Positions 19,080 to 42,300 of a stretch of 51,784 bases of DNA are shown one piece after another (the first letter of the stretch is position 1; each line of letters begins with the position of its first letter). The stretch is from Octopus bimaculoides (taxonomy: Eukaryota). The stretch is from NCBI RefSeq assembly GCF_001194135.2, contig NC_068993.1:61907947-61959730 (forward strand), written 5' to 3'. The notes under the pieces were generated by a model that worked only from the letters and a program-made list of their open reading frames with translations, did not search any database and was not told where the DNA came from. The position numbers and the translations under genes are program-made.

Positions 19080-20308
19080 CTGTTCAAAGTAGAAAAAGCA
19101 AACAAAAATACACATTAATTAGATTGACAACCTGACATTTGATCGGTTTTTGAATTTTTACTTTGGGGTCATTTACTCATTCTTTTGTTTCAGTCATTTG
19201 ACTGCGGCCATGCTGGAGCACCGCCTTTAGTCAAACAAATCAAACCCAGGACTTACTCTCTGTAAGCCTAGAACTTATTCTATCGGTTTCCTTTTGCCGA
19301 ACTGCTAAGTTATAAGGACATAAACACACCAAAATCAGTTGTCAAGCGATGGTGGGGGACAAGCACACACACACACACACACACAGAGTGTACTGGGTGC
19401 TCTTTACATGACACCAGCACCAGCTATGTTGAGTTGACATAGTTGGGGGTAAGAAAAATGTCAAACAACACAAGAAGCCTGCAGAAGATAAAGATCTGAG
19501 ATGATGTGGACAGAAGTGGTGAGGTGTGATCTCAGAACAATGACCCTCACAAAATCGATGCTGAAACACTATCATATGTATAAAAATGATGATAAATATC
19601 ATCCTTCCCAGAACACTGTACATGGTTTCTTGAACACAGAGGCCTGATGACATGCTCTGATTGTATAATAATATATGTCTGATGAAATGGTCTGGTTATA
19701 TAATAACATGTCTGATGAAATGGTCTGATTATATAATAACATGTGTCTGATGAAATGCTCTGATTACATAATATACTGAAGTACATTATTGAGCAAATAA
19801 ATAATTTGCCACTTCTCACAATAAATTTTGGGTAACGGATTATCAAATGTATTAACAAAATTAAAAAAAGGAAAACATTCTTTTAAAACAAGAGTGATCT
19901 TACTTACTTTCTGGGACCATAAAACTGTCTCCTGTTGTCAGTATCATATTCTTGTAACCAATTCTTACTTTGAGTTTACCAAATTGCACAAGGAACATCT
20001 AGAAAAATACAGGAAAAATAAAAAATAAAAACTGACACAAAATGCTACAAGTGCTCTAATGGTTTTTCTTTAAGTAACAAGTTTCGAAAAGGAAATTTCA
20101 TTTTAAGGGGTGGGGATTGAAAGAAGGTCACTGTGACATGGTGACAGGGATGTTTGTATTTTGAGTGGAGGAATGCAAAATAATCAGGCTTGGAAGTTTG
20201 GTTCTACTACATGTCTGGGAAGGCAACAAGTCATTTGATAAAGACTGTGTGCAATATAAGTGTGTGCCAGCCATGTTTATTTTTATTTATGCACCATCTA
20301 TATATATG

Positions 20309-20473: not shown

Positions 20474-21759
20474 GTATATATACACACACTCTTTACTCTT
20501 TTACTTGTTTCAGTCATTTGACTATGGGCATGCTGAATGTGGCCATGCTGGAGCACCGCCTTTAGTCGAGCAAATCGACCCCAGGACTTATTCTTTGTAA
20601 GCCTAGTACTTATTCTCTTTTGCCGAACCACTAAGTTATGGGACATAAACACACCACCATTGGTTGTCAAGCAATGGTGGGGGACAAACACAGACACACA
20701 AACATATACATACACATACATATATATATACGACAGGCTTCTTTCAGTTTCCGTCTACCAAATCCACTCACAAGGCTTTAGTCGGCCCGAGGCTAGAGTA
20801 GAAGACACTTACCCAAGGTGTCACGCAGTGGGAATGAACCCGAAACCATGTGGTTGGTAAGCAAAACACAGTTAAACCTGGGTAGTATTTTAATTAATAA
20901 ATTGCAATTATAGATTTTGGTTCTTTCTATATAACTAACATTAACTCAGGGTGAGGAGAAAGAAACATGGAATAGTAGACTAAACAGTTTGAATTGCATT
21001 CCGTTCAGTTGAATGAAGCTTAACAACTTATCGATCTTGCCTGTCCACTCTAAGACGCAGGTCAAAATGGTCAATTAACCCTGAACTTCAGCATCTAACC
21101 CAGGCTGTATTAATTAGCTGTATGCATGCTATCAATCTCTAAGTGTCTCCATAAGAAGCGCCTCACACACCAAAAAAAAAACAAAAACAAAAAAACGATC
21201 CAAGGGACATAACTGCATCAAACCCCAAATAGAAAATCACAAATAACAGTGGATAATGGCCGGACTAACATGAACCGCCTCTTCCCAGAGATAAAAATGG
21301 ATTTTCGAAAGGCCAACACCCCTATCTAGAATAAGCGGAAGCTAACCAAAGCATCAATCCACAAGACCTGGGAGAGGTCTACTGATGTGAAAAGACAGCC
21401 AAGTGTCAAGAACAGAGGAAACAAGTCATCAATGGCTTTAGCTCCACCAAAACAATCGAATTGACATGTTCTGCTTCTGCAATACTTTTCCTCCATCCAT
21501 TGTAGGTACAGTTTTTATATCCACCACTAAAAGTATTTGGTTCTTGTTCTATAAAGAGATATTCAATGAAAATATGGGATGGGGGATTAAAGTAAAGCTG
21601 AAAAATTGTCTTTGTGAAAAGCATCACTGGGGGTTTTTATCCACTTCTCACAACATAAACAGAGGTTAGGTTCTATATGCCCACGGGCATATGGCGTAGT
21701 GGTTAAGAGCATGGGCTACTAACCCCAAGATTCCGAGTTCGATTCCAGGCAGTGACCTG

Positions 21760-21803
<44 letters not shown>

Positions 21804-24547
21804 CAACATCAAAAAATACTTTAGGAATGAGAACTCAGGTTTGAAATTTCCCCAAGACACCTGATGAAGGCTGGAGGGTATATCAGCTGAAATGTGTTAA
21901 CAACAAACAAGATGAGGACAGATATCCATCAAAATGTAAATGATATAAAGAGAGGTTCTTTTTCAAAGCCATAGGGTTGAAACTACTTTCTGCATTTAAT
22001 GACGATAAAATTTTGAGCAGGTCTAACCACTTTCTGTGTAAAAAGGGTTAAAATTGTTCAAATCTTAGAAAGAATTTATGAAACACAAACTGTAATCACC
22101 AAGTGGATGTCATATTTAACATCTTTATATCATTGTATTAATAGTGCAATATGAACAGATGTGAATTATAGAGGAGACACACACACAGAGTACTTACCAC
22201 TTGATTCCTAGAACGGTTCAGTTGTTTATAGGCTCCTTTCTTCATAGAGATCATCCCCATAAATGCCTTCTCTGAATCCAAACAACAGCAATACACAATA
22301 TCATGTTCGTTTGCTGAATCCAACATGCTATTGTTTATGTACCTATATGTCGGTTTGGGTGCAAAACAACCTACAACAAACAAAAAAACAAATGTTTATT
22401 AAATAAAGAGGGAAAATCCTTCAAAAAAAATTACACATATATCTGCTTGTATGGTCATGGATCAACTTTGATGCATTAAATCTATGACCAAATGAGTTCC
22501 AACCATGACATTCCTGTCTTTATTTTTTCCCCCAGAATCAATGTATCTTGGACATTATTCAAAGTGTCCTATTTGTTTGTAAGATAATAGAGAGGGCGCA
22601 TTTTAATTGATATACAGTAATCTCTCGACTATCGCAGGTGTTACATTACTAGACCCTCTGCGATAGGTGAAAATCCACGAAATAAAAACAGTACCGTACT
22701 GTATATTTTTTTAATCATTTTTATAATTTGTATATATTTATTTTATTATAAATACAAAACAACACCACAGAGGGACCGACATAGGGAGGATTTTTTTGTG
22801 GCACCAGCACAAGTGAGGTTGCCATGCAGCTTGCTAGACTCTGAATCCCAAAGAAGGAAGGCAACTTTATACTAGGCGATGAGGAATAGAGAGGGGTAAA
22901 GTAGGAGTGGAAAAATGTTGGAGTAGAACCAGTGAAGAGCCACAAAGACAATAACATTTTAAAAACTCTAAGTCCATACTTGACGTGTTTGAGTAACTTT
23001 TATCATCAGGTTTTACAACTGTCAGCAGGGATTTATTTCTAATGCTCCGAGTAGTATACTCTCCAGCATTTATATGATCTGGAAATAAAAAGGAAAAAGA
23101 GAAGCAACTATAAAAACAGGCTCCTCGTCATCATTTAACGTCCATTTTCCATGCTGGCATGGGTTGGACGGCTTGACAGGAGCTGGCAAGGCCAGAGGCC
23201 ACTCCAGGTTGCATAGTCTATTTTGGCTTGGTTTCTACAGCTGGATGCCCTTCCTAATGCCAACCACTTTACTGAGGGTACTGGGTGCATTTTTTTATGT
23301 GGCACTGGCACCAGTGCTTTTTACGTGGCACCATCATTAAGGCATTTTTATGAAGGCCCAGCACCAACACCAATTGATAAAATAATGAACATACTGAGAC
23401 TGAACCTGAAACCATATGGCTGGGAAATAAAAAAAACTCCCTGACCACAATGCTTGCTTTTATTACTGCTCCCTTCTGTATAGCCTATGCCTGGCACTCC
23501 GTCGGTTATGACGACGAGGATTCCAGCTGATCCGATCAACGGAATAGCCTGCTCGTGAAATTAGCATGCAAGGGGCCGAGCATCCACAGACATGAGTACC
23601 CTTAATGCAGTTCTCAGGGGGATTCAGCATGACACAGAATGTGACAAGGCTGACCCCTTTGAAATACAAGTACTACTCATTTTTGCCAGCTGAGTGGACT
23701 GAGGCAACGAGAAATAAGATGTCTTGCTCAATAACACACATTGCCAGGATTTGAACTCACGACCTTACAATTGTGAGTTGAATGCCCTAATCACCAAAAC
23801 TTACTTTTACTCTTCAATGTCCGTTTCTCAGTTGGTGTTGTCTGAGATTTTTTGTTTCGGGAAGGTGAGATTTTTTGTTTGTCTTCTGAGACATTTGATG
23901 GTACACCTGAGGGGAGGAAAAAAAAAAACATGAAATTTCATATTTTACAGACATTTCTGTAAACAATGAACAAAAATGAAAGAAAAAAAAACATGCAAAA
24001 GAATAAAGAAAATATGAAGAAAAGAAAAGAAAAATAAAGAATAGGAAAAATGTAAGAGAATAAAAAAACATAATAGAATGGTAACTGCCATGGAATGTAT
24101 GTTTGTGCATTTGTATATTTATATACACACACACACACACACACATTTATTTATTTGTTTCAGTTCCCAGGACTTACTCTTTGTAAGCCTAGTACTTATT
24201 CTATCAGTCTCTTTTGCCAAACCACTAAGTTACGGGGACGTAAACACACCAACATCAGTTGTCAAGCGATGGTGTAGGGACAAGCACAGACACACGCACA
24301 AATACATACATATATATATACAACAGGCTTCTTTCAGTTTCCGCCTACCAAATCCACTCACAAGGCTTTGGCCGGCCCAAGGTTATAGCAGAAGACGCTT
24401 GCCTAAGGTGGAACTGAATCCGGAACCATGTGGTTGGGAAGCAAGCTTCTTGCCACACAGCCACACTGTGCCTATAAACACTAACACAAATATGTATGTG
24501 TGTGTGTGTATGTGTATATATATATATATATATGGCTGGATGGATGC

Positions 24548-24587
<40 letters not shown>

Positions 24588-26985
24588 ATACATATATAAA
24601 TATATGGGTGGAGGAATGCATGTGTGTGTGTGTATATATACATATATATATGGCTGGAGGGATACATGTATATACATACATAAATAATATATGGATGGCG
24701 GAATGCATGTGTGTGTGTATAAAACTTACTTTTACTTTTCACTGCATGTTTCTCAGTCGATGACGGCTGAAGTTTTGTGTGTCGTTGCGGTGAAGATTTA
24801 TCTTCAGGCACACATGAAGGTACACCTGATGGGGAAAATGTTCGTGTTTTATAAAGATTTCTAAAAAATAAGGATCAACAACTACAAAGAAATATATATA
24901 AAAAAAAAAAAAGAAACAACGAAGAATGGACGGAAGAAAAATTAAAATATCAAAAAGAAAAATGAGAAGTGGAGAGAGAAACAGCAAAATGAGAATAAGA
25001 TAAGGGCAGAGGAACCACCACGGACAGAGCAAGATCCCCCCCCCCCACCTCTGTTGTGGACAGTGAAGAGATGATATCTGCAGACTGCACCACTGCATGT
25101 CAGGAAGTGCAGTGTTAATCCTCAGTTAGGTGAGGGATATTTTAGGAAATATAAATATAAGGGCTACATTCATGGGTTTGTCTGACTATCTAAGATCAGG
25201 TCTGTCCAATCAGGACTGACTCCTGGATATACAATAACTTGAATGACCCCCTCATACAATATTCCAGCCATCCGTTTTTGCCACCCACTATTCCTGGGAG
25301 GATTGTTGGGGTAGTGTCCTCCTCAGCCACATCCTCTAAGGGGTCCTATCGAAAACACCTGTCATTACACTCTCCGGCTGGATTCCCAAGCGCACCCATC
25401 CGAGACTATAGCTATTATCCAACCATTTCACTGTTGGTCCTACCTTAAGTCTCCTGCCAGTTGGCTCAGCGTGAAGAATCTGTGGCATTGTAATCACATG
25501 TCCAAAGTGCCAGAGCTGCAACTTCTCAATACAGAGAAGTTGCAGCTTGACTGGGAGAGACTTAATGATCTCTGACCCAACACCCTGTCAAGTAATGTTA
25601 CTCCGCAGATACTTCAGAGAAACCCATTTAGGCCCCTTATATTTTCAATTATATTCTTCTGGTCATTACCCAAAATCCATGATCATAGGTGAGGACAGGC
25701 ACAATACTGAATATTGAAATTAAAATACATTTTCTTAAAATATCCTAAAATTGAACAGTGATCAGATTTGTGCCTTTAGAAATACAGTCAATAATTGCAT
25801 AAGCTTTGCTAAAATTTCTGTGCATAAACATCGCATTTATAAGAGTAAAATGTCATCCTTAAGGATAAAGAATAATGCCCCTTCCTGAGTCATAGATACC
25901 TTTAGGGCCTGTTTGGGGGTTCCTGGACAGGATGTCAGTCTGTCGCAAGATTACTCAGTTTTGCCTGCCAAGTGGATAAGAATAATGTGAAATGAAGTGT
26001 TTTGCTCAACAACACAATGCATCAGCAGATCCCAGGAAATGAAACCACAAATTTACAATCATGGGTCCAGCACCCTAACCACTAAGCCATGTATCTCCAC
26101 CTTCCTTTATTTGTACGTAGTTTAAAATCATGATTAAATAAGCAAAAATAATTATGTATACTTGTCATTAAGCAAAAAGAAGCTGTTATATACATGGGTT
26201 ACAGTTTGACAGCATCCAGCAAGTCACAGGGCTGTGCCAAGTTCCAGTGTTGGCTTTGGCATTGTTTCTGTGGCTAGATGCCCTTTCTAATGCCAACCAC
26301 ATTAAAGTGCATACTGGGTGCTTTTTAAATGATATATATATATAACTTACTTTTGCTTTTTGATGTCTGTTTAGCAGTTGGTGATGGCTGAGACGTTTTG
26401 TGTTTTGAAGGTGAAGGTTTGTCTTCAGGCAAACCTGAAGGTACACCTAAGGGAAAGAATTTCTTATTTTATAGCTATTTCAGAAAACGCTGAACAACAA
26501 AAGAGAAACAAGGAAAAGAAAGAAAAACACAGGTAATACAATAATGTGAGGAAAGGAATGAAAAAATAATAGTGAGAAAGAGTAGAATAAGAGGATGGCT
26601 ATAGATGCATGGTTTAGATAGCTCAAAAGATCTGCTGGTTGCACTCATTCTGTTGTTACTTCTTTATAAAGCATCTCCTTTGCATCAGTAAAAGTTCATG
26701 ATGATGCTAGTGTGCCAGTCATTGGGGATAACATCTCCCTGCATAACTAGCTTCATTAAGCAAATAAATTAATAATGTGTACATCCAGCTTCGGATATTT
26801 TAAGTATCTTGGCTACTATCACCAAAAGACCTACCAATTTCCAGGGTTTTATATCCTTCATGGCATTTTCTACTAAACGGCAGTCAACCTCAATGTATGT
26901 TCTTGGGTTTACAAGAGAGAAAGCAAATGCTCTTGATGTATGAAGCAGAGCTTATTCAGATCAAATGCCTCTGGAGTTAGAAAGT

Positions 26986-27018
<33 letters not shown>

Positions 27019-27637
27019 ACTTACTTTTATTTTTCAACATATTTTTCTCAGGTGGCTTGGGTTTCTTGTGTCGTAGAGATGATTTGTCTTTTGGTACACC
27101 TGGGGGTATAGCTGAGAGGGGGAAAAAGTTCCTATTTTACAGACATTTCAGAAAATAATAAACAAAAAATAACAAAGCAAAAAAAATAAAGTAGAAATGA
27201 AAATCAAAGAAAGAAAAAAGAAAAATAAACAAAAAAAATGATGAGTAATAGAGGGAAGAAGAGTTATTTACAGAGTGATAGCAAATAAGAGCATGCACAG
27301 AGTAAATCCAACTTGCTCCACTGCTTCCATGGTGGACAACACCAGAATCTCCAGACACACAAAAACACTGAACCATCAAGAGATTACAGCATCCCACGAC
27401 TGGACAACTGCATGTCAGGATGAGCAGCATCGAGCTAGATGAAGGCATGGCATATTTCAAGAAATAGATGTATCATCATCATTATAATATTCACTTTACA
27501 ATGCTCGCATGGATTGGACAGAATTTGTTGAGGGGAATTTTCTACAGCTGGATGCCTTTCCTGTCACCAACCTTCACTATGCTCCATTGTCTGCTCTGAT
27601 GTGGTTTCTACAACTCGATGCCTTTCTTAACACCAAC

Positions 27638-27680
<43 letters not shown>

Positions 27681-30600
27681 GTATGTATGTGTATGCATTT
27701 GTATGTGAAGGTGCATAGCTTAGTGGTTAGGGTTATTCGGCTCAAGGTCCTAAGGTCATGAGTTCAATCCCTGGTGGCACATTGTGTCCTTGAGCAAGAC
27801 ACTTTATTTCACGTTGCTCCAGTCCACTCAGCTGGCAAAAACGAGTAGTACCTGTAATTCAAAGGGGCCGGCCTGGTCACATTCTGAGTCATGTTGAAGG
27901 CCACGAGTGTCTACAGACTGCTCAGCCATTTGCAATTTCAGAAACAGACTCTTCCACTGATCAGACCAACTGGAACCCTCATCGTCATAACCGACAGAGT
28001 GCCAGTCTATGTCTGAGAGTGAACCTCTCTGAGAACCTGGGTGAGATATTCCCTTGCTTGGTAACAGTTGAGTGCCACAGACAGGAAAGGCATCTGCTTG
28101 TCGAAAATATGTCTCAATAAAACCTTATTCAACATTGGTGAGCATGGAAGACTGATGTTAAATGCCTTTGGAATTCCAAGGAATGATGGAGTAAAGCCTC
28201 TACAGTTAGAAAATGTGTGTGTGTGTGTGTGTGAGAAAAGCACTGAGTCCACTAAACGGGTCACAATGCGACAGAATGACCTTCTGATCAGGGGAGAATG
28301 TCAACTGCTTAACTGGCCCAGTAGGGTGGCATCATTTGAAAACTAAAACACACAAAGCATGCTGTGATCAGCAATGTGTAACAACATCCAATTGTCCGGT
28401 CGATACAGTGATATATATATATATATATATATAATATATAAAACTTAAATTCAACTTACGATGAAAGTAAACAAAGTTTGCTTTAGAAGTGTTGAGATGT
28501 ATTGAAAGATACAGAAAATAATTTATCCTCAAACGCAGGATAATGCTAATACAATAGCATGAACAGGATAAACTCGCCATATATTGCAGAAACTTACTTT
28601 TAGTTTTCAATGTGGGTTTAGCAATTGGTGATGGACGAAGTTTTCTGTGTCGTAAAGATGAAGATTTGTCTTTGAGCACACCTGAGGGTACTGCTGGGAA
28701 AAAATTTCGTATTTTATGGATGTTTACAAAAATAATGAACAAAAGAAAAAAAAAGAAAATAAAGTACAAAATAAAAGAAACAAACAAAAGAAAAATGTAA
28801 AAAAAAAAAAAAACGAAAAGAAAGACTAGAAAGAAAGAAATAAGGAGAGAATGAGAAGACTATACTGCGGGACAAAAACTGACTTGCTCAGGCTAAGTCC
28901 ACCTCGACCATTGCCACTACTGCTTTCTACATAATCAACTTTAGGTTAAAGAATTGTAAATCTCAATTCTGTCTTTGTCCCTCCAACACTGCCAACAGCC
29001 CTGTGATTTAATCACAAGATCCAGTTCAAAGTGAGGCTGAAAGTTCCTTTATCAAACATACTAGAATAGTACGCATCAAAAAAGACTGGGAATTATTTCT
29101 GCCACCTTTCAGTAAATCTTGGTGGTTTCCGTCAAGTCTGGCTCCACTTTCTTTTGGTATTTCATTTTATCTTCTTTCAGTTATTCTTTACTCTCTTTAT
29201 TCTCACAGACTAACATTTATTATTCTTTTATCTTCTCTATAAATTTCACCCACTTTTTTTAACTAAAAATAAAAATTCTTTAATACTGAATGGTATTCTG
29301 TAACTGGTTTCAGTCATTGGATTACAACCATTTTGGGGCATTGCCTTCAAAAGGCTTCAGCTGATCATATCAACCCACAATTGCTTTCAGCTTGGTATTT
29401 ATGTTATCAATATCTATTTGTCAAATTGTTAAGTCACACTTTTTGACACAATATCAGTGTTTTTTCATAAGCACTGGTAAAAACAGACAAAAATACACAC
29501 ACAAACAGACATATGCACAGTCTTTTCACCAACCAAACTGCAATCTTAAGATATCAGTCATCTTGACGCTACATTAGAAGACACTTACCTAAGGTGCCAT
29601 GCAGTGAGATTGAACTCAGAGCCACATGGTTCCATAGCAAACTTGTTAACCACAAAGTTATATACATAAAACTTACTTTTACTTTTCAATGTATGTTTAG
29701 CAGCCAATGGTGGCTGAGGTTTTTTGTGTCGTGAAGGTGGGGTTTTGTCTTTGGCTACACCTGAGGGTGAAAAAAAAAAAAAAACGTAGATAAAGCTGAA
29801 AATATTGACAACAAATAAGAAGTAAAAAGAAGCAATGACAATAAAACAAGAAGAAAGATGAAAAGTAGAGGAAGAAAAAGAGGAAAAGAAGAAAAGAACA
29901 AAGGAACAGCAACTGCTACAGTGTCCAAGTCCACCTTGTTCACCTCCACTGTGGCCATCATATGACTCAATAGATTTTCAGAAACATTGGATAGTAGAGA
30001 GATTGCAATACCTGCCATGATAATGTTTGTGTGAAAAGAGCTATGCCACATAATAACAAGGCATGGAATTGTTTCAGCCATTAGGCTGTGGCCATGCTGG
30101 GGCACCACCACTGCATGTCAGGCGGTACAGCATTGGACCACAGCCTGCTGGAGGAGTGCTATATGTAGGTCAATTGTGACCAGCATTGCCTTACTGCCTT
30201 ACTTGCCCAAGGTGCCACGCAGTGGGACTGAACCCAGAACCATGTGGTTGGTAAGCAAGCTACTTACCACACAACCACTCCTACGCCTATACAAGTCACT
30301 TACTTTTATTCTTCAATGTCTGTTTCTCAGTTGGTGTTGTCTGAGGATTTTTGTGCCGAGAAGGTGAGGATTTGTCTTGCGGTACACCTGAGAGAACAAA
30401 AGAATTTCATAATTTACAGATATTTCTGAAAATATTGAACAACAGCAACAATAGAAACTGGAAGAAAAACAGAAGCAAGAAACAAAAGAATGGAAGGTAA
30501 AAGAATGCAAAATAAAAGAATAGAAAGAGAAGAGCTAAATCTCTTTACAAACACCAATCAATGATATGGTCACTCCTCAGAAAAAACGTCTACACAGTGA

Positions 30601-33600
30601 AATAAGGAAAATGGTCATCTGTGGATGGTACCCAATTATTGGAGTACTACCTAGGCACCACACATGTGTTGACCAGGGTCTAAAGGGTTGTTTTAAGATT
30701 CTCATAATGCATCAACATCATCATTAGTTTTAACATCCACTTTTCCATGTTTGCATAAACTCCATCCAGCCCATGCAAACATGGAAAAGTGGATGTTAAA
30801 ACTAATGATGATGTCGATGCAAGTAAAGCACAGTAAGGCAACGAGTTTCTACAGCTTTATGCCCTTCTGTCACTGACAAGGGTGGGAAGTAAAGTAAAGG
30901 TAGCTTCTCAAGTTATGCCGAGTCATAAGGACCAGTTTGCTGGTTCCCATGGCATATAAATTCCCCACATGGATACTGTAAACTGTCTTTTATATAAGGG
31001 ATTCTTTTCTAATTCAGAGGATAAATTACATATCAGTTGTGTACTGGGATCAATCTAATCGACTGCCCCCCCCCCACACCTCCCCAAAAATTTTGGGCCT
31101 TGTGCCTTGGAGTAGAAAAAAAGTGATGGAGTAAAACTTGACGACTATATGTGAATTCGTTAACTTACTTTCGTAGTTCAATGTACGTTTAGCAGTTGGT
31201 GATGGTTCAGGTTTTCCCCATTTTAAAGGTGAGGACTTTTCTTGGGGTACACCTGAAGGAAAAGAAGAATAGATTTAAAGATATTTCAGGAGATAAGGAA
31301 CAACAACCAAAGATAAAGGGGGAAAGGATAGAAAAGAGAAAAAAGGAAAGGAAAATAGAAGAGAGGAAGAATAGAAAGGAAAATAATTGAAATGAATTTT
31401 CTTTTTTTTAACATGCAGAGAATAAAAGAAGAATGGCAAAATAAAATATGAAGGCANNNNNNNNNNNNNNNNNNNNNNNNNNNNNNNNNNNNNNNNNNNN
31501 NNNNNNNNNNNNNNNNNNNNNNNNNNNNNNNNNNNNNNNNNNNNNNNNNNNNNNNNNNNNNNNNNNNNNNNNNNNNNNNNNNNNNNNNNNNNNNNNNNNN
31601 NNNNNNNNNNNNNNNNNNNNNNNNNNNNNNNNNNNNNNNNNNNNNNNNNNNNNNNNNNNNNNNNNNNNNNNNNNNNNNNNNNNNNNNNNNNNNNNNNNNN
31701 NNNNNNNNNNNNNNNNNNNNNNNNNNNNNNNNNNNNNNNNNNNNNNNNNNNNNNNNNNNNNNNNNNNNNNNNNNNNNNNNNNNNNNNNNNNNNNNNNNNN
31801 NNNNNNNNNNNNNNNNNNNNNNNNNNNNNNNNNNNNNNNNNNNNNNNNNNNNNNNNNNNNNNNNNNNNNNNNNNNNNNNNNNNNNNNNNNNNNNNNNNNN
31901 NNNNNNNNNNNNNNNNNNNNNNNNNNNNNNNNNNNNNNNNNNNNNNNNNNNNNNNNNNNNNNNNNNNNNNNNNNNNNNNNNNNNNNNNNNNNNNNNNNNN
32001 NNNNNNNNNNNNNNNNNNNNNNNNNNNNNNNNNNNNNNNNNNNNNNNNNNNNNNNNNNNNNNNNNNNNNNNNNNNNNNNNNNNNNNNNNNNNNNNNNNNN
32101 NNNNNNNNNNNNNNNNNNNNNNNNNNNNNNNNNNNNNNNNNNNNNNNNNNNNNNNNNNNNNNNNNNNNNNNNNNNNNNNNNNNNNNNNNNNNNNNNNNNN
32201 NNNNNNNNNNNNNNNNNNNNNNNNNNNNNNNNNNNNNNNNNNNNNNNNNNNNNNNNNNNNNNNNNNNNNNNNNNNNNNNNNNNNNNNNNNNNNNNNNNNN
32301 NNNNNNNNNNNNNNNNNNNNNNNNNNNNNNNNNNNNNNNNNNNNNNNNNNNNNNNNNNTATATATAATGATACTAATAGTGAAGCCTCTTGGCTTCACTA
32401 TTATTATGCCTGTCTGTCACCATCTTGCCCAAAACTGGGCAAGATGGTGAAATGGTGTGAGAGCCGTTGCTATGGCATTGAGGTAGATCCAGCCACCCCT
32501 GTTAACGGGGACAAAACCCAGATTTAAAACAGTTGATGATGAAGACGAAACCAATGGAATATCCATCATACTATGGCTTACATTCTCTTATATGTTCATT
32601 TCTAAGATAATAGGGTGTAACTGGATAAAGATTTGGGTGCTATTTCTAGCAGGCCGACTGACCACATAGAGATTCCCTTGTAAGCTTAAGCAAAGCCCTT
32701 GCAGTGTCTGAGTCATGTAAACAGGTAAGATGACAAACCTTTATTTTTTTCTGCAGATCTGCCACCACTCTCTGGTTTCTTTACAATCTTCATAGACTTT
32801 TGGAAAGTTTTTTCTGTTTCGTCAATAAGAGACAAGTTGGTGTCAAATACATCAAAGTAGCGTGTCTGGACTATTGGTTTATGAACCCCAAATGCAGAAA
32901 TCACTTTTCTGGGTGACTCTTTACTTTTCTCCGGACTAGTGCTGAAGCTGTCAGAAAAAAAAAGAAAAAATTCCAAATTCAAATTAATAAGATCTGATAG
33001 TTTCACAACATAGAAAGTATATCATTGACCAAGTTGTGATCTCTGTGCATTCATGTGTGTGTGTGTATTACAGAATGGACTAAACAGAACAGGAGAAACA
33101 TGGGATGGAGTGTCACCAAAGAGGTCACAGGATGTGTGATGAAAGATTTCAGAAAAGGACACTAAAATAGGAACAATAATAAAACTGAAGTGAACACTAA
33201 GTATATTGCGCAAAAAAATATGATCATTTCCAAATATAACTATATATATATACACACATATGTAAAGTACAGTGACACATTATGGTTAACATAGAGATAC
33301 AAAAGAGATAAAAGACAACAAAAGAAAAAGATAAGAGAAGGAAAGAACAAAAGAAATTATGGAAGTTACCTTTCTGACACTGATATCTTCCTCTTTTTTC
33401 TGGTTGATACAGCTTCTGGCAAAACCTGTGAAGAATATATAAATATATAAGATGACATCGTAGAATATGGAATATAGTTATTCACTTTTATATAGATACA
33501 TACAGAGTGGCCCAAAAGTGCGTTTACAGTTATCATGTAGGCACTTGAAATTTTTTTTAAAACATTTTATTATATTTAAATTTCTATCTTACAAACTGAA

Positions 33601-34814
33601 AAGGGAGCTTGACAAAATTAACTAAATTAGCATAGAATAATGGTTTCATATTTTTTATAATTAAGATCTAAACTGCTAATATATGAATGCTAAAGAGATA
33701 GTTGAATAATTGGAAACCTACTTTTGNNNNNNNNNNNNNNNNNNNNNNNNNNNNNNNNNNNNNNNNNNNNNNNNNNNNNTATATATATATATATATATAT
33801 ATATATTCTTCTATATAGATATATATATGGGTCGATGCCAGTAATGCCTGACTGGCTCCCATGCCAGTGGCACATAAAAAGTACCATCCGAGTATGGTCG
33901 ATGTTAGTGCCGCCTGACTGGCTCCTGTGCCAGTGACATGTAAAAAGCACCCACTACACTCTCAGAGTGTGCTTTTTGAGCAATTTTGAGGGAGAGACTA
34001 AGCCAATAAGATCAACCCTAGTGCCCAACTGGTACTTATTTTATCAACCCCAGAAGGGTAATAGAGGCAGAGTCGACATTGGCAGAATTTGACCTCAGAA
34101 TGTAGGGAGTCAGAAGAAATGCATTCTGCCAGCTCACCACTGCCTTAATTCCAAATTATGTTAATAAATTTTACTTACATCTGCATTATTATTTATATTG
34201 TCATTTTCTAGATCATCCTCATTTTCTTCATCATCTTCATTTTCTGGAAAACAAGATAAAAAATAGAAATAATACTTTTCTAAATCTCTCAAAGAGATTT
34301 ATACAGTAGTAACATGATAAAGTGGTGGTATGTTGTCAACGTAATGTGACAGTCCCATGAACAGGAAGAATACTACTGCTATTTAGCCCTAAGAAGCAGT
34401 ACTGCTTCCTGTCAGCCTTGACACATTTCCTGTGTCCTATTTTCGAAATCAGTGAATGTATTTCACTTATGTTTACAGAAGTAGCTAGGCATCGACAGCT
34501 CTGAAAGGGGTTTCAAGGAATAGTGTCCCTGCCTTCCTGAGCTAGTTTTCCACCACATATCTTAACAATCGTGGTAGGGGCCTTGGTCTCGGGATAATTC
34601 ATATCTCGAAATTGAGGTTTGGGGTAAGTAAGGGCATGCTCCCTGTAGAAAATGCAGTTCCAAAAAAGCCTCATGATAGAAAGGGAGAATGGGCACCAGC
34701 CAGCCAGCCAGCCCAAAGGTTGGTGTGGGCTGCACCTGCCTACCTTGGTTGCTATGGCATTGAGGTAGATTGGGCCACCCCTGTTAACGGGGACAAAACC
34801 CGGATTAAAACACT

Positions 34815-34894
<80 letters not shown>

Positions 34895-36291
34895 TCAATG
34901 AGCTTCTTTCAGTTTCCATCCACCAAATCCACTCACAAGACTTTAGTTGGCTTAAGGCAATAGTAGAAGACACCCTGGGTGCCCTGTTGTGAGACTGAAC
35001 CCAAGACAACATAGTTAGAAAGCAAACTTCTTACCCACAGATCCAAATTGGGACTCCAGGGGTGGGGATATTTGCTAAGGAGGAGGAAGTCACCAACAGA
35101 ACAGAAATTGCTGAATTCATCCATGTTGTCGTTGAGAAAGAAAGAAAATGAAAGAGACAATTTGGGAGAAAGAAAGTGAATGAAGGAGAGAGAAATGAGT
35201 GAAAGTGAATGAGAAAGAGAGTGAGTGAGCAGAAAATACCTTGACATTCCTTTGAACTTGAAAGACTTGTGTTGCCTCCATTTTTGACAGTTATCTCTGT
35301 TTCTTCAGCTGGTGGATCACAGACATTTATGGAGAGACATTCCTTTGCAGGTGATGAAGCATCCTTTTGGACAAAAGATTCCTCATCTTCAGGAAAGGAT
35401 TTCATACCTCGCTTAGTGATTATTCTGACATTGTTGTTAGAATTAGAGGATGCAGGAGACACTTCAGAAGTCTTTGCAGTGGTCACCTCCTTCTCTGAGA
35501 CTATCACTTCTTGATGGTCACCGTCTTCAGAGTCAGCAGCACTAGTGTCGGCTAGTGACTTCATTCCACGTTTACTGATGACTCTTTGCACATATGAAAC
35601 CCTTCAACACAAAATGAAACCATTATTAATGAACTGTTTTCTATATTTATTTTGTTTATAGAAGCAGAATTCAAAGAATAAGACAAAATCCTGATTTCAA
35701 AGAAATACAACTTTGAGATTTTTTGCCTAAGCAATATATATATATATATATATATATAGCCATCTGGTTCACCAGTCCTCAGTCAAACCGTCCAACCCAT
35801 GCTAGCATGGAAAGCGGACGTTAAACAATGATGATGACGATAATGATATATATAAATATTCTGCCTATGTGTCTGTGCACACCTTTGAATGCAATGTATC
35901 CCAGAAGGTTTGCAAATCAAAAGACATTTTAAGATCCACAAAGATCCGAACTTATCCACAGCTCTTGGTGGTCCAAATCGGATATGCAATTTATGTGGGT
36001 GTCTTTTCAAAACATTGTCTCGTTTAAAAACCCACATCAGATGCCATAATGGTTCTAAGGTGTAGGCACAGGAGGTGGTCAAACTCTCCATAAGGAGTAG
36101 ACAACCACCATGATTGAGCACTAGCCTCTAAAGCATTTTTTTATTCTCTCTCTTTATTTTCTGTGTTCCTTTCTGCTGAAGAGCACAGGCTCAAAACATA
36201 AAAGACTTTCTCACATTCTCGAGCGTTAAACTAATGCACCTGTTTGTTATTTATATATCTGTCTTTGTCTTTTGTTTTTCTATAAATTCCA

Positions 36292-36332
<41 letters not shown>

Positions 36333-39300
36333 CAAAAATGAGACAAAAACACAAAACATCCAGACAGTTAGGTGACACAAGAAAGGGACAACACATCCAG
36401 ATAGACGATACAAAGAAAACAAGGACAGGTCATTCGGAGTTTTCTTACTCAGTCGAATTCCAGATTATCGTTGCAATTTTGGCTGGTTATACTCAAGATT
36501 GCTCTAATCTGGCCAGCCCCAAAGTAAAAATAAGCTAAGAGCACTAGATTCCTGGGAAGAAAGCAGCAAATATATATGAAAACAAGGACAGAAAAAAACG
36601 GAGAAATGGTACACAAATACAAATAACAGGACATTAACAACGGGTGTCTTTCGACTAAGGACAAATTAAATTAAGCTGGCGTGTGTGGAAGTTATGGCGG
36701 GGACATAAAATATGACAGGCACAGGGAGGAATATGGATGTTGCACAGATGGTAGTCAAACCAAATTAGTGTGTGCTTCGTGTGCATATGTATGTGTATAT
36801 GCATACACATACAATATATTCTGTTTTATCCAAGAGCTTAAAGATAAGAAGAAATACTTACTCTTCAGAAGCATTTGAACAAGAATCTGACATTGACTCA
36901 ACAGGAAATGATAATCTGCAAATAAAAGGCTCTCGTTTAATAACCAAATAAAAAAAATACAAATCAAAATACACCCCCATATCCCCCGCCCCCAGTCCTA
37001 TAGAAATATATTTCATAAAAAAAAAACATCCTAACTGACAGATTATGAAGTGGGAAGAGTTTTTTATCTTTTTTGTTTTAATACACCTTCTCAGTGAAAC
37101 AATGCCTGTACTAACATTTTACAACTCTCCCTCTCCACCCACCACTCCATATCAATATCCTCTTCATTTTAAGGCTTTGTTTTTCTATAACAATATATAT
37201 TATTTCATTCTTGAATAGCTCGACCCCTAAAATACTCTTCTTGCTATAGTCTTTAATAAACAACCCAGAAATTAGGACAAAACATTGAAGTAAATCACCA
37301 ACATTATCAGCATTTAATAGCCTTTTTCCCATGCTTGTATGATTTGGATGGTTTAAAAGGAACCAACAAGCCAGATGACGGTGCCTAGCTCCTACTTTGG
37401 CCTGGTTTCTATGGCTGGCTGCCCTTCATAACAATAATCCCTTTACAAAGTGTACCTAGTGCATTTTTCATGACACGAGCACGAGTGATGTTTTGCAAAT
37501 ACCTAAAAGACAAGATCCCCTCAACCGAATGGGAAATAGTATCGAAGGAGATGAAATTATGATAGAGGGACAGAAACGGGCCTTAATATTATTTGTTTCT
37601 AACATAAGCACATGCCATGAAATTTCAAGGAAGGATTTTATGATAATAGCATTTGTTTTTAAGCTTACCTTTTCCTGGCAGGGAAATTTGTGAGAGAAAG
37701 AGGAGACACACTATTCCTGGCATCATTATCATCATCTGCTGCAGGTTTTACAGCCACTATTTTCTGAAATAAACAAAAATAATATTTAAATAAATATTTC
37801 ACATAATAATCCTCAACATAATAAATATTCTTTTCTACTCTAGGCACAAGGACCAAAATTTTGGGGGAGGGGCCAGTCGATTAGATTGTCCCCAGTAGGC
37901 AACTAGTACTTAATCTAGTGACCCTGAAAGGATGAAAGACAACATCAACCTTGGAGGACTTTGAACACAAAACGTACAGATAGACAAAATACCGCTAAGC
38001 ATTTCGCCTGGCATGCTAACATATCTGCCTGCTTGTCGCCTTAACATAATAGATATCAACATAATAATCCTGTTGCAATTTTTTTTTTTTATGACTTGAC
38101 CATAGGAAGAAAGGAGAGCATCCGTGACCCCTTCTCATCTGATGGGAGAAAAAGAAGAAATTATGCTCAGAGGAAATTCTGTTAAAAGTACTTAAGGATC
38201 AGGTGGTGATAGGCAACAGATTGAGTTTATCACAAAAGAGCAGGAACTCATGGACTTCCACAGTTTGTCTGCACTCACGTAGCAAAGGTTGTGGTGGAAG
38301 GTTGGCAAAGAAAATTCTGGTACCTCCACCATAACTACTAAAAGCCATGATGAACCATTTTCACTCACAAACCTTTAGTCAGTCTGGAGCTATAGTAGAG
38401 GGTATTTACCTGAGTTTCCACATAGTGGGACTGAACCCAAGACCATATGGTTGGGAAGCAAGATTCTTCACCACACAGCTACATGGGAAAATATCATCAC
38501 CATTTAACGTCCGATTTCCATGCTGGCATGGGTTGGACATTTTGACTGAAAACTGGTAAGCTGGGGAGCTGCACCAGGTTCCAATCTGATTTGGCAGGGT
38601 TTCTACAGCTGGATGCCCTTCCTAACTCCAACCACTCCAAGAGTGTAGTAAGTGCTTTCTACATGTTACTGGCATGGGTGCCAGTTGCATAACATCGACA
38701 TCGGCCATGACTACGATTTCACTTGGTTTGACAGGTCTTCTCAAGCATAGTACATCATCAAAGGTCTCAGTCACTGGCTCTGTGAGGCCCAATGTTCGAA
38801 CAGTGCTTTTTACGTACCACCAGCATGGGTGCCAGTTACACGACACTGGCACCAGCCACAACTGCAATTTCACTTGGCTTGACGGGTCTTCTCAAGCACA
38901 GCATATTGCCCAACGTTCCAGTTATGCGACACTGGCATCGGCCACGACTATGATTTCACTCAGCTTGAGAGGTCTTCCCAAGCAAGGCACATCACCAAAG
39001 CTCTCATGGGAAGTATTTGAATGGCAAAATTGAAAAGATACTTACAACATTGTCAGTGTGGTTCGCAATTTCTACATCAGAGTCTGCAAAAAAGTAACAA
39101 AATAACTTATAAATCAATTAACTTTTATGTGGTTATGTTCTTAATGAAGCAGACTGCGTTAGGAAAAGCTGTAGTAAGAAACTCACTTCAAAGCTACATG
39201 GTTCCAGGTTCAGTCCTACTGCAGGGAACCTTGGGTAAGTATCTTCTACTATAACCTTGGGTCGACCAAAGTTGTGCGAGTGGTTTTGGCAGAAAAAAAA

Positions 39301-42300
39301 GCTGAAAGAAACCTGTCATATATATGCGTGTGTGTGTGTTTGTCCTCACTGCTGCTTGACAGCCAGTGTTTGGTGTGTTTACATTCCTGTAACTAAGTGG
39401 TTCAGTAAAAGAGTTGGATAGAATAAGTATCAAAAACAAATAAGTACTGGGGTCAATTCACTCGACTAAAGATTCTTCTGCCTTGAAGTGTGTGTACTGA
39501 CCAAGTAGATCTGTAATCAAAGGTACAACCACCTTTATCACTTAGTCTTTCCTTTCAGACAGTGTATCTAAAGCTACTTTATCCAGTTAAGTCCTGGATC
39601 AAAACTGTTCTAATCAAGACAGTATAGCAGCAACATGAGCACTCTTGAACTTTAACTGCCCACATTGTAGCTTTTTACTTTTAACTACCAATTTTGGTTC
39701 ACCATGTGATGGTCAGATCCACCCACACCTTTAACATGATGGACTAGCCTAGCATCTGTTCATCAGTTATAAAATGGGAAGTTCTGGCCTGCTAAGTCCC
39801 TAGGGAGAAGAGTTTTACTATGAGCGATCTGAGATTTTCATGTGAAAACATTTTGATTTCCTTTTGCAGTTTTCAGCTTGGACAGATTTCAAATCAGAAT
39901 CGTTGATGTTATGCTTAGTGTCTAACAAACATTTTGAACAGAAGTAACCAGAATTTTTGTGATGCTGTATTTCAGGTTCTTTTTTCACTAACCTTTATAA
40001 CTTCATTTTTATGAGCATTTAAATCCATATGTTTTAACAAATATAATGACCTACCATTTTGCTGTATCAAATTTTAGCAATAGTAATAAATGTTTCCGAG
40101 CAGTCGATTGCAACTTGTCTTTGAATTTGTTCTTTAATATCTATTCGGACATCAATTAATAGAACTTGACCCACAATTCATACAACATTATATACCTCTA
40201 TTACAGCATGGGAAATAAATAACGTAAACAGGAAGAGCATCCAGCTGTAGAAACCAAGCCAAAACAGACTGGAGCCTAGTGCAACTCTCCAGCTCACCAG
40301 CACCAATCAAACCCTCTTACTCATGCCAGCATGGAAATCAGACACTAAATGAGGAGGAGGAGGAGCAAGTAATAAAAAGAAGATAACTGGAAGTGTTTCT
40401 TATTACCAGTTTCTGTAAAATAGTCATCGAAATTTTCAAATCCGTCTTCATCAATTCGAATATGTTTCCCTTCCAAAATAGCCTTTCCTAGGTTTCTGAA
40501 AACAACAAAAATAATCATTTTAACAACACTCAATTAGCAATAATTATAAATATAGTTAATTGTTAATTAATTTCATCATCATCATCATCATCGTTTAACG
40601 TCTGCTTTCCATGCTAGCATGGGTTGGACGATTTGACTGAGGACTGGTGAAACCGGATGGCAACACCAGGCTCCAGTCTAATTTGGCAGAGTTTCTACAG
40701 CTGGATGCCCTTCCTAACGCCAACCACTCAGAGAGTGTAGTGGGTGCTTTTACGTGTCACCCGCACGAAAACAGCCACGCTTGAAATGGTGTCTTNNNNN
40801 NNNNNNNNNNNNNNNNNNNNNNNNNNNNNNNNNNNNNNNNNNNNNNNNNNNNNNNNNNNNNNNNNNNNNNNNNNNNNNNNNNNNNNNNNNNNNNNNNNNN
40901 NNNNNNNNNNNNNNNNNNNNNNNNNNNNNNNNNNNNNNNNNNNNNNNNNNNNNNNNNNNNNNNNNNNNNNNNNNNNNNNNNNNNNNNNNNNNNNNNNNNN
41001 NNNNNNNNNNNNNNNNNNNNNNNNNNNNNNNNNNNNNNNNNNNNNNNNNNNNNNNNNNNNNNNNNNNNNNNNNNNNNNNNNNNNNNNNNNNNNNNNNNNN
41101 NNNNNNNNNNNNNNNNNNNNNNNNNNNNNNNNNNNNNNNNNNNNNNNNNNNNNNNNNNNNNNNNNNNNNNNNNNNNNNNNNNNNNNNNNNNNNNNNNNNN
41201 NNNNNNNNNNNNNNNNNNNNNNNNNNNNNNNNNNNNNNNNNNNNNNNNNNNNNNNNNNNNNNNNNNNNNNNNNNNNNNNNNNNNNNNNNNNNNNNNNNNN
41301 NNNNNNNNNNNNNNNNNNNNNNNNNNNNNNNNNNNNNNNNNNNNNNNNNNNNNNNNNNNNNNNNNNNNNNNNNNNNNNNNNNNNNNNNNNNNNNNNNNNN
41401 NNNNNNNNNNNNNNNNNNNNNNNNNNNNNNNNNNNNNNNNNNNNNNNNNNNNNNNNNNNNNNNNNNNNNNNNNNNNNNNNNTGCGTCATACAGTCTGCCT
41501 TTTACTCTGAGTGAGAGTCCCTTTGTCGCCAGCAGGGGTAAGAGCTCTCTAAACTTTGCCCAGGCTATTCTTATTCTAGCAGCTACACTTTCAGCGCACC
41601 CACCCCCACTACTAACTTGGTCGCCCAGATAGCGGAAGCTATCGACTACCTCTAGTCTTTCACCCTGGAATGAGATAGAAGTTTGTACAATATAAAGGCA
41701 TCCAGCTGTAAAAACATTACCAGATTAGATTGGAGAGTGGTGCAACTGCTGGCTCTCCAGTCCTCAGTCAAACCGTCCAACCCATGCCAGCATGGAAAAC
41801 GGACGTTAAACGATGATGATGATGATGATGTGAATAAGCACTACATTTGAAAGAGTAAGCTGAATGCTAAAAGATTACAAGTTCATACCAGAAAACCAGG
41901 GAGAGTGGTCATGGGAAGGTTAGTATCAAAAGGCATTCAGTCTTATTAAGCCTCCTCAGTAAAGTATACACTTCACAGTACTTGCTGCCAAAAATTTGAC
42001 TTTTTAAGATAATTCCTCACAGCACATGGAACATCAATTTTACAAAGTTTATTCACTGATTTTGGTCAAACTTTGACAAATACTGGACTATCAGAATTGT
42101 TACATAACCACACAGAATACCTTGCAGTGTTCAAATATGGCTAATTTACATTAAGAGATCATATTTTGTCACGTTCAACTTAGCCTTTAATCCTTTCAAG
42201 AGACAATAAGATAAAGTATGCATCAAGAACTGGGCTTAATTCCTTTCGAGTGTTGAGGTGAGTGGGGCGAGTTCCTTTGGATTGTTGGGCCTCACAGAGG

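Follow-up and report, generated by a model that had tools for sequence, protein, structure and literature searches.

A putative octopus CENP-C orthologue with an array of basic repeat exons in place of the CENP-C motif

On centromeric nucleosomes, the acidic patch and the tail of CENP-A are both read by the CENP-C motif, which has defined CENP-C since the 1990s. To our knowledge, it is the sole direct structural link between CENP-C and the CENP-A nucleosome, and the lineages known to us that do without this link lost both proteins together. The locus described here lies in a 51.8-kb stretch of Octopus bimaculoides DNA, hereafter the window. The original prediction placed in it a CENP-C gene that keeps the N-terminal motif and the cupin and has no canonical CENP-C motif. 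Is this gene a true CENP-C, is the motif really missing, and what stands in its place?

Gene model and relationship to CENP-C

Independent rebuilding of the gene gave 21 exons on the minus strand, encoding 718 residues, with the ATG at 42502 and the stop codon at 19014-19012 (Table 1). All junctions are canonical AG/GT and a single frame runs through without interruption. The earlier gene model was reproduced, with the 33-aa linker of exon 18, the repeat exons before it and the cupin exons after it. The two coordinates of the prediction are true exon edges: exon 9 starts at 32947, and the first cupin exon ends at 22198. All exons but R5 are one-to-one collinear with those of an O. vulgaris gene annotated as “Mif2/CENP-C cupin domain-containing protein”, and orthologous exons share 83-98% nucleotide identity. 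Both boxes of exon 6 recur in O. vulgaris and also in P0027, a relative at greater distance; exon 9 is 81% identical to an ORF of a related species, and exon-7 sequence runs directly into exon-8 sequence in all annotated O. vulgaris isoforms. The O. sinensis gene is misnamed in RefSeq.

Table 1 Features of the octopus CENP-C gene, in gene order (window coordinates)
Feature	Position	Strand	Remarks
Exon 1	42474..42502	-	ATG and MALSTAQIG(I); donor GTAAGT; orthologous to O. vulgaris N-terminus MALSTAQIRT
Assembly gap, intron 1	40796..41481	.	frame continuous from exon 1 to exon 2
Exon 2, N-terminal box	40407..40495	-	NLGKAILEGKHIRIDEDGFENFDDYFTET; presumed Mis12-binding box of CENP-C
Exon 3	39046..39083	-	DSDVEIANHTDNV
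Exon 4	37669..37763	-	KIVAVKPAADDDNDARNSVSPLSLTNFPARK
Exon 5	36862..36915	-	RLSFPVESMSDSCSNASE; recovered via orthologue
Exon 6, acidic/Ser-rich	35240..35601	-	boxes RVISKRGMKSL (35585-35553) and RIITKRGMKSF (35426-35394)
Exon 7	34179..34243	-	acidic stretch NEDDEENEDDLENDNINNNAD
Small assembly gap, intron 7	33727..33779	.	flanking exons both phase 0, join in frame
Exon 8	33370..33425	-	VLPEAVSTRKKRKISVSE; resembles a nuclear localisation signal
Exon 9	32739..32947	-	conserved box ISAFGVHKPIVQTRYFDVFDTNLSLIDE (32901-32818); phase 1-1
Assembly gap, intron 9	31457..32358	.	very probably conceals an additional repeat exon, orthologous to O. vulgaris Ra
Repeat exon R1	31169..31252	-	84 nt, phase 1-1
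Repeat exon R2	30304..30387	-	84 nt, phase 1-1
Repeat exon R3	29677..29760	-	84 nt, phase 1-1
Repeat exon R4	28598..28693	-	96 nt; 84 nt from second in-frame acceptor at 28681
Repeat exon R5	27025..27111	-	87 nt, or 75 nt via second acceptor; without O. vulgaris orthologue
Repeat exon R6	26351..26446	-	96 nt, or 84 nt via second acceptor
Repeat exon R7	24730..24825	-	96 nt
Repeat exon R8	23805..23906	-	102 nt
Exon 18, 33-aa linker	22980..23078	-	NHINAGEYTTRSIRNKSLLTVVKPDDKSYSNTS; 99 nt, phase 1-1; homologous to pre-cupin strand
Exon 19, first cupin part	22198..22370	-	
Exon 20, mid-cupin	19908..19998	-	MFLVQFGKLKVRIGYKNMILTTGDSFMVPE
Exon 21, cupin end and stop codon	19012..19079	-	

The C-terminus of the protein matches Pfam CENP-C_C (PF11699) with 41.2-44.6 bits, for a cut-off of 29 bits. 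Its best PDB matches are all CENP-C chains (7xhn_C, 6o2d_A, 7x85_A, 6o2k_A and 2vpv_A), from human, fission yeast, chicken, fly and yeast, and the octopus protein reaches 58.7 bits with a profile made from the C-termini of mollusc CENP-Cs. AF2 confidence for the cupin is only moderate, in its last four or five strands. At the other end, the N-terminal box IRIDEDGFENFDDYF is common to the N-terminal boxes of CENP-C from the bivalve Mactra and to a Nucella fragment (E = 8.4e-5); searches of this box with Pfam Mif2_N and against the PDB gave no match. The cupin was thus confirmed as predicted, and the N-terminal motif in part, by its likeness to the Mactra and Nucella sequences. We presume that the box resembles the fungal DExGxExxDxFF box.

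After the O. vulgaris gene, the next-best relatives are the Mactra protein, the Patella “centromere protein C” and two other CENP-C-like proteins. On this sequence evidence, the gene in the window is orthologous to CENP-C, a protein of the inner kinetochore. As the CENP-C motif was not found, we class the gene as an orthologue by descent and as a variant rather than an ordinary member of the family.

The missing motif and the repeat exons

The CENP-C motifs of human, chicken, rat and yeast, as given in the PDB, were combined into a motif profile. It gave no match at all to the window protein, and its top score in a six-frame translation of the window was 7.2 bits, for a partial match on the wrong strand. 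On three CENP-C homologues that served as positive controls, the same profile scored 32.3 bits (P0031), 17.3 (Mactra) and 12.9 (Patella). Regular expressions for the motif were equally negative in the protein and gave zero matches in any reading frame of the 51.8-kb window, on either strand. YW, WW and FW are all absent from the whole protein, as the original prediction stated for the exons. Its sole tryptophan, in LKWGKP of repeat R1, is an arginine in O. vulgaris.

The motif is also missing from the six frames of the 62.8-kb O. vulgaris locus, which contains no N anywhere, and from each of the 25 annotated O. vulgaris and O. sinensis isoforms; these have no tryptophan, save in the N-terminal extension of one. 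Nor was it found in the 4-kb full-length transcript contigs of P0027, obtained from several RNA-seq runs. The conserved CENP-C-motif exon is 105-108 nt long with phase 1 splice junctions (Talbert 2004; PMC549713, supplementary figure S1). Exon 18 (99 nt) and R1-R8 (84-102 nt) resemble such a phase 1-1 exon of ~105 nt in phase and rough size only, and comparison of exon 18 and of the repeat profile with the motif exon using hhalign gave probabilities below 0.1%. As judged from these searches, the ~24-aa CENP-C motif (RRSxRxxxxPxxYW) is genuinely lost from the octopus gene.

The region before exon 18 is occupied by eight visible tandem exons, most probably nine, of 84-102 nt and phase 1-1. They encode a unit of about 30 residues with the consensus (SVPS)GVPxDKSSPSRHKKPQPSPTAKxTLKSK. 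Within the window the unit is confined to the CENP-C gene and has one orientation throughout. All copies are open, with lengths that are multiples of three and a conserved acceptor and GTAAGT donor, and mean pN is 0.26 versus a pS of 0.42. Annotated isoforms show cassette skipping of R1, R4, R6 and R7. The array (243 aa) has a pI of 10.6, with 58 K/R versus 17 D/E, and 11 S/T-P sites, five of them S/T-P-x-K/R. It is similar to no Pfam family, and AF2 confidence is low along its entire length. The exact SPKK tetrapeptide was not found in the array, where the forms seen are SPSR, SPLK, SPQR and SPTAK; the likeness to the SPKK-type tails of histone H1 and sperm H2B is one of composition only. When aligned by profile to canonical CENP-Cs of other molluscs, the repeats occupy the place of the motif and of the basic linker that follows it. 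The earlier suggestion that the repeats replaced the motif therefore fits in position; descent of their sequence from the motif could not be demonstrated with hhalign.

Comparison with O. vulgaris also bears on the assembly gap in intron 9. On one side of the gap, O. vulgaris 28800-29126 matches window 33019-32701; on the other, 29647-30053 matches 31453-31031. The repeat exon Ra (DVPSDVPKDKSSPLRHKKPQPSPTAKQTLKSK), at 29233-29337 of the O. vulgaris locus (L002), falls within the 520 nt left unmatched. This sequence comparison suggests that an orthologue of Ra most probably lies in the gap, as an additional repeat exon.

Alternatives to loss of the motif

It had been proposed that a motif exon hides in this gap, or was missed. 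The gene contains three gaps whose lengths are merely estimates, and the small exon 5 came only via its orthologue, so that another exon might have escaped the gene model. But the donor of exon 9 and the acceptor of R1 are both phase 1, hence the frame is continuous across 31457-32358, and it is unbroken across every other gap as well. The O. vulgaris interval matching the gap has Ra as its sole exon content, neither octopus locus has the motif in any frame, and the isoforms are free of tryptophan apart from the extension mentioned above. The gapless collinear O. vulgaris locus, the isoforms and the relative's transcripts essentially refute a hidden exon, which we regard as extremely improbable. 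The other candidate is the sequence YTTRSIRNKSLLTVV, within exon 18 at 23058-23014, which had been singled out as the nearest relic of the motif. It could be a degenerate yet functional motif that kept the arginine anchor and exchanged the aromatic pair for Val-Val: the T-R-S-x-R pattern is present, and both O. vulgaris and P0027 conserve TRSMRN and LRSMKK. However, MAFFT and the mollusc C-terminus profile place LLTVVKPD on the conserved pre-cupin strand (ipvvnpet) with high posterior probability, some 65-70 profile positions downstream of the motif. Exon 18 has no profile similarity to the motif exon (hhalign probability, 0.07%), the PDB motif peptides remain unmatched, and the lysine of RNK is a glutamate in O. 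vulgaris. The alignment argues for a pre-cupin strand, and a functional relic is highly improbable.

If the motif is truly absent from this gene, a canonical motif-bearing CENP-C could be encoded elsewhere in the octopus genome, leaving a specialised paralogue in the window. CENP-C duplications with subfunctionalisation are described for Drosophila (bioRxiv 10.1101/134817). When the O. vulgaris protein was used in an exhaustive HMMER search, just seven relatives came up at E values of 0.001 or less, including four CENP-Cs from other species; a divergent paralogue would easily be missed at this sensitivity. Against a paralogue, this search gave no second octopus protein, the O. vulgaris and O. 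sinensis entries (two clusters examined) fall on one contig per species, and the longest O. vulgaris isoform maps to the single locus. P0027, the only other close relative group, likewise has no motif, and the window gene keeps all other CENP-C landmarks, the N-terminal box included. We consider a paralogue unlikely. The repeat exons might also descend from a tandemly duplicated CENP-C-motif exon of which the basic, proline-containing half was retained. KSSPxRHKKP in the repeats may be compared with RSSRTRLRP in the motif, the array stands at the motif's place in the profile alignment, and in Patella the Arg-rich half has outlived the aromatic one. The repeat exons agree with the conserved motif exon in phase (1-1) and in size class (PMC549713), but phase 1-1 exons are common, which makes the phase match weak evidence for such descent. 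As the repeat profile reaches a probability of only 0.09% against the motif exon in hhalign and the motif profile scores nothing on the array, this origin appears quite unlikely.

Comparison with known CENP-Cs and proposed mechanism

Like canonical CENP-C, Mif2 and Cnp3 (human 7xhn_C, chicken 7by0, rat 4x23, yeast Mif2 6qld), the octopus protein has the PF11699 cupin, its N-terminal box is acidic and of the DEDGFENFDDYF type, and it is long and disordered in the middle. The order of N-terminal box, middle, basic region, pre-cupin strand and cupin is also the same. In contrast, it has neither the RRSxRxxxxPxxYW motif nor a second, “central domain” copy, and its one tryptophan is not conserved. 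Among molluscs, Mactra antiquata (KAL4237037.1) and the limpets Patella vulgata (XP_055956396.1) and P. caerulea share the cupin, the pre-cupin strand and the Lys/Arg-rich linker with octopus. Mactra has the octopus-type N-terminal box twice and keeps the motif (RRSSRTRLRPVAWYKNERVVFDY), of which octopus retains nothing, having the exon-repeat array instead. In Patella, the Arg-rich and ERIVYDY parts are kept and TLESHK replaces P..YW; octopus has neither part.

Turnover of exons has a parallel in grasses, where small exons in a poorly conserved stretch upstream of the conserved C-terminus of CENP-C were recurrently duplicated or deleted and copy number varies among related species (Talbert, Bryson & Henikoff 2004, PMC549713). 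Similarly, R5 and Ra differ between the two octopus species, the orthologue of Ra being probably in the window gap. Grass CENP-Cs, however, kept the motif, their duplicated unit is an exon pair, and the sequences are unrelated to the octopus repeats. The precedent invoked from insects, in which the cupin would be kept without the motif, proved wrong: CenH3-less insects lost CENP-C entirely (PMC9252888). In Lepidoptera, other holocentric insects and Mucor circinelloides, CENP-A and the whole CENP-C gene were both lost (PMC9252888). These lineages and octopus both do without the reading link from CENP-A to CENP-C, but octopods are reported to keep CENP-A, together with a motif-less CENP-C. Since CENP-A expression is reported in the octopod Amphioctopus fangsiao (PMC12210499), the motif-less CENP-C would belong to a lineage that kept CenH3. 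Chicken cells are viable without the CENP-C motif, and there CENP-C can support kinetochores via other contacts without reading CENP-A (PMC9252888). The chicken motif is nevertheless present and used in mitosis, whereas the octopus gene has none.

Our preferred account is that of a CENP-C orthologue that lost its motif and carries in its place a repeat array acting as a basic tail; we give this account as a whole a probability of about three in four. The N-terminal box, presumably the docking site of the Mis12 complex, is retained along with several conserved internal boxes and the C-terminal cupin, which serves dimerisation. From its composition, the array may form a strongly basic tail without ordered structure, which would bind DNA or nucleosomes in a non-specific, multivalent manner. 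Binding could be tuned by CDK phosphorylation at the S/T-P sites, and cassette splicing could adjust it further. Specificity for centromeres would instead rest on contacts with other kinetochore proteins via the conserved boxes and on self-association of the cupin, not on direct reading of CENP-A.

More tentatively, and with considerable doubt, cephalopods, with CENP-A and ordinary monocentric chromosomes, may have uncoupled CENP-C from direct CENP-A reading. A fast-evolving, alternatively spliced basic array rich in CDK sites would have replaced the motif, repeat number would set the stickiness for centromeric chromatin, and copy-number differences between sister species and isoforms would be those that a centromere-drive arms race predicts. 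The sequences suggest that molluscs hold a graded series, with an intact motif in the bivalve and a half-degenerate one in limpets. Cephalopod CENP-C escapes motif-based searches. Animals that deleted the motif yet retained CENP-A as well as the N-terminal box and the cupin would be a natural experiment on how CENP-C finds centromeres when it does not read CENP-A, in which the sufficiency of multivalent basic repeats, of kinetochore-protein contacts or of cupin self-association would become testable.

Gene organization and C-terminal domain

The gene lies on the minus strand of AT-rich metazoan DNA containing seven assembly gaps. Its exon model rests on open frames together with splice signals and the phase of each intron. 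It comprises 21 exons, from the ATG at 42502 to the stop codon at 19014-19012, with AG/GT at all exon junctions and a single unbroken frame of 718 codons. The limits of the region originally singled out are real exon ends: exon 9 starts at 32947 and the first cupin exon ends at 22198. The 33-aa linker of the original prediction is exon 18 in our independently built model as well. A location of exon 1 inside the gap 40796-41481 was ruled out, as this exon was found elsewhere (see table). Runs of (TA)n and (CA)n occur at several points of the window, some of them adjoining gaps.

The spliced C-terminus is recognized by Pfam CENP-C_C with 41.2-44.6 bits (cut-off 29). The solved structures it matches best are human CENP-C, S. 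pombe Cnp3, chicken and Drosophila CENP-C and yeast Mif2. Pfam score and structure matches therefore agree on a CENP-C cupin, as had been proposed. The N-terminal box was matched neither by Pfam Mif2_N nor by the PDB. An AlphaFold2 model of the O. vulgaris protein, calculated with a seven-sequence alignment, averages a pLDDT of 36, a quality insufficient for fold searching. Conservation of the two exon 6 boxes extends to O. vulgaris and to P0027, a distant relative retrieved from RNA-seq contigs (RLISKRGMQSFP, KRISKRGMKSFP). Within the middle region, conservation is highest in the exon 9 box (P0027 counterpart YGVHEDTGIKNNFQNMGTNLQVIDEDE). This box may be comparable to the acidic-hydrophobic CCAN-binding stretch of vertebrate CENP-C.

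Features of the gene, listed from its 5' end, and other repeats of the window (window coordinates)
Feature	Position	Strand	Content
Exon 1	42502-42474	minus	begins MALSTAQIG
Exon 2		minus	contains N-terminal box IRIDEDGFENFDDYF
Four exons after exon 2		minus	acidic and Ser-rich; two R[VI]I[ST]KRGMKS[LF] boxes
Exon 6 boxes	35553-35585; 35394-35426	minus	R[VI]I[ST]KRGMKS[LF]
Exon before exon 9		minus	resembles a nuclear localisation signal
Exon 9 box	32818-32901	minus	ISAFGVHKPIVQTRYFDVFDTNLSLIDE, conserved
Exons after exon 9		minus	R1-R8, then linker exon, then three cupin exons
R5	27025-27111	minus	repeat exon
Intronic element (examples)	26470-26500; 23930-23965		TTTTCAGAAATRTCTGTAAAATAYGAAA
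SINE-like family	23121-23311; 26193-26326; 38494-38636; 40230-40362; 40582-40766; 41694-41822; 48152-48314; 49552-49727	both	
Second repeat family	24166-24478; 12646-12953; 19245-19385; 20580-20864; 39170-39429		
LINE fragment	25339-25587	minus	reverse transcriptase

Search for the CENP-C motif

Regular expressions of the form R-x-S/T-x-R...P...[YFW]W gave no match in the six frames of the window. All hydrophobic-Trp pairs on the gene strand of the window were listed and none is motif-like. A motif profile was also built from PDB sequences (human 732-776, chicken, rat, yeast Mif2 and the human central domain). It scored 32.3, 17.3 and 12.9 bits with three other homologues taken as controls. 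Across the six translated frames of the window, the best hit reached 7.2 bits and was partial and on the wrong strand; the window protein gave no score at all. This protein contains a single Trp, in LKWGKP of R1, the first of its eight repeat exons (R1-R8), and an Arg occupies that place in O. vulgaris. No Trp is found in the 25 annotated isoforms of O. vulgaris and O. sinensis, save in the N-terminal extension of one of them.

According to one suggestion, a motif exon could hide in the assembly gap 31457-32358. This gap is intronic, with exon 9 on one side and R1 on the other. Because both flanking junctions are phase 1, the frame crosses it without any need for the gap sequence. Orthologues were retrieved using the full-length protein model as query; word-index protein searches with exon 9, or with linker plus cupin (one extra junction Val), returned only a genomic ORF or nothing. 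The O. vulgaris orthologues are annotated as “Mif2/CENP-C cupin domain-containing protein” and have many isoforms. The longest one, P0019, served to locate the O. vulgaris locus (L002) on chromosome OX597826.1, as 62.8 kb with zero N. Apart from R5, every exon of the window has a single collinear orthologue in L002, with 83-98% nucleotide identity. The whole 51.8-kb window, flanking DNA included, is collinear (reversed) with OX597826.1 75.93-75.99 Mb, again with 83-98% of nucleotides identical. Downstream of CENP-C, O. vulgaris has a Peptidase_C1 gene.

O. vulgaris positions 28800-29126 correspond to window 33019-32701, and 29647-30053 to window 31453-31031, which reaches the gap edge. The intervening 520 nt of O. 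vulgaris hold one extra repeat exon, Ra (DVPSDVPKDKSSPLRHKKPQPSPTAKQTLKSK), at L002 29233-29337. Scanning all frames of the O. vulgaris locus with the motif profile and with the regular expressions gave no motif. Since the interval matching the gap contains Ra, the missing sequence most probably includes a ninth repeat exon rather than a motif exon. The absence of the motif noticed at the outset thus holds both in the window and in the gapless O. vulgaris locus.

The T-R-S-x-R stretch of exon 18 had been viewed as the nearest relic of the motif. MAFFT and a profile of canonical mollusc C-termini, running from the motif through to the end, align this stretch differently: LLTVVKPD of exon 18 is superimposed on the conserved pre-cupin strand (ipvvnpet) with high posterior probability. 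This strand is located about 65-70 profile positions past the motif, corresponding to 85-110 residues in Mactra, Patella and P0031, another CENP-C homologue. The alignment of the window protein starts at profile position 36, immediately past the motif, and its last repeats overlie the Lys/Arg-rich linker. When compared to the motif exon with hhalign, exon 18 and the repeat profile gave probabilities of 0.07% and 0.09%, respectively. Profile alignment and hhalign both reject exon 18 and the repeats as relics of the motif. In exon format, exon 18 and all repeat exons are phase 1-1 and 84-102 nt long, and the motif-exon module described by Talbert et al. (PMC549713) is 105-108 nt long with phase 1 splice junctions. 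Such a format is compatible with descent of these exons from that module but, taken on its own, only hints at it, and the hhalign probabilities argue against it. Overall, we consider that the gene is a CENP-C orthologue lacking the CENP-A-reading motif, with a probability of about three in four.

The repeat exon array

The repeat unit consists of an exon and about 150 nt of upstream pyrimidine-rich intron. Copies are confined to 23.8-31.3 kb, in one orientation, and are 67-79% identical at the DNA level. Every copy retains the acceptor and the AAAA/GTAAGT donor, remains open and is a multiple of three nucleotides long. Mean divergence between copies is 0.26 at non-synonymous and 0.42 at synonymous sites. 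The repeats are real coding exons under moderate constraint. A dispersed transposable element was also envisaged and ruled out, since the copies stay within the gene, all point the same way, and keep their splice sites and open frames.

The array encodes 243 aa with a pI of 10.6 (58 K/R versus 17 D/E), 40% of which are Ser, Thr or Pro. It contains 11 S/T-P sites, five with the full CDK consensus. AlphaFold confidence is low along the entire array. R1, R4, R6 and R7 are skipped in annotated isoforms and Ra is used with two acceptors. O. vulgaris lacks R5, and no counterpart of Ra can be seen in the window, where the gap occupies its place. Thus, the number of repeats is changing between closely related octopus species. 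A conserved intronic element of about 30 nt is located 30-40 nt upstream of every repeat exon. At R6, this element provides an 11-aa 5' extension (TFSEIAMKCIS) in O. vulgaris and has a stop codon in the window.

Relatives and possible centromere recognition

Only seven relatives, at E up to 0.001, were retrieved when the O. vulgaris protein was used in an exhaustive HMMER search. The P0027 cluster, with full-length members of 955-992 aa, comes from 4-kb contigs of several RNA-seq runs (SRR8281688, ERR4030425, ERR9682754, SRR11869391). It displays the N-terminal box, both ISKRGM(K/Q)SFP boxes, an exon-9-like box, a long Lys/Ser/Pro-rich region and a cupin (PF11699, 34.5 bits). No CENP-C motif was detected in this cluster (motif profile -1.1 bits). 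From the shared boxes, we infer that P0027 belongs to another cephalopod. Two RanBP2-type zinc-finger-like modules (DW-x-C-x-x-C...C-x-F-C-G) are visible in P0027, P0033 and P0034 (L003, L005) at residues ~770-840. They sit between the basic region and the cupin of this group, and the octopus genes are devoid of them.

The bivalve Mactra antiquata has two copies of the N-terminal box, a canonical motif (RRSSRTRLRPVAWYKNERVVFDY) and the cupin. CENP-C of the limpets Patella vulgata (P0030, “centromere protein C”) and P. caerulea (P0039) keeps RRSRRVRV...ERIVYDY, and TLESHK replaces P..YW. Thus, the bivalve has an intact motif and the limpets a half-degenerate one, and the octopus lineage has lost it.

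The O. sinensis RefSeq models (P0011-P0025) are misnamed “muscle M-line assembly protein unc-89” or “nucleolar protein dao-5”. These models stop within R7, the repeat exon at window 24730-24825, in a shifted frame (...VPEDKPHRNDTKKLSRHRLRNIQ*) and are thus devoid of linker and cupin. The frameshift is probably an indel of that assembly.

Octopods are reported to possess and express CENP-A (PMC12210499). A motif-free CENP-C would retain dimerisation via its cupin and may dock the outer kinetochore via its N-terminal box. Contacts of the conserved boxes would allow it to find the centromere. The basic repeat tail could contribute a non-specific, multivalent affinity for DNA or nucleosomes, tuned by CDK phosphorylation and splicing; a specific role of the array is put forward tentatively. 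Such a mechanism is plausible because the CENP-C motif is dispensable in chicken cells (PMC9252888). The insect precedent first invoked, with the cupin kept and the motif lost, is incorrect: CenH3-less insects, as well as Mucor, have lost the whole of CENP-C (PMC9252888). Duplication of CENP-C exons has a precedent in grasses (PMC549713). Neither cephalopod CENP-C nor a motif-less CENP-C turned up in the literature searched. The gene itself is already known by automatic annotation in O. vulgaris; what is new is its architecture.
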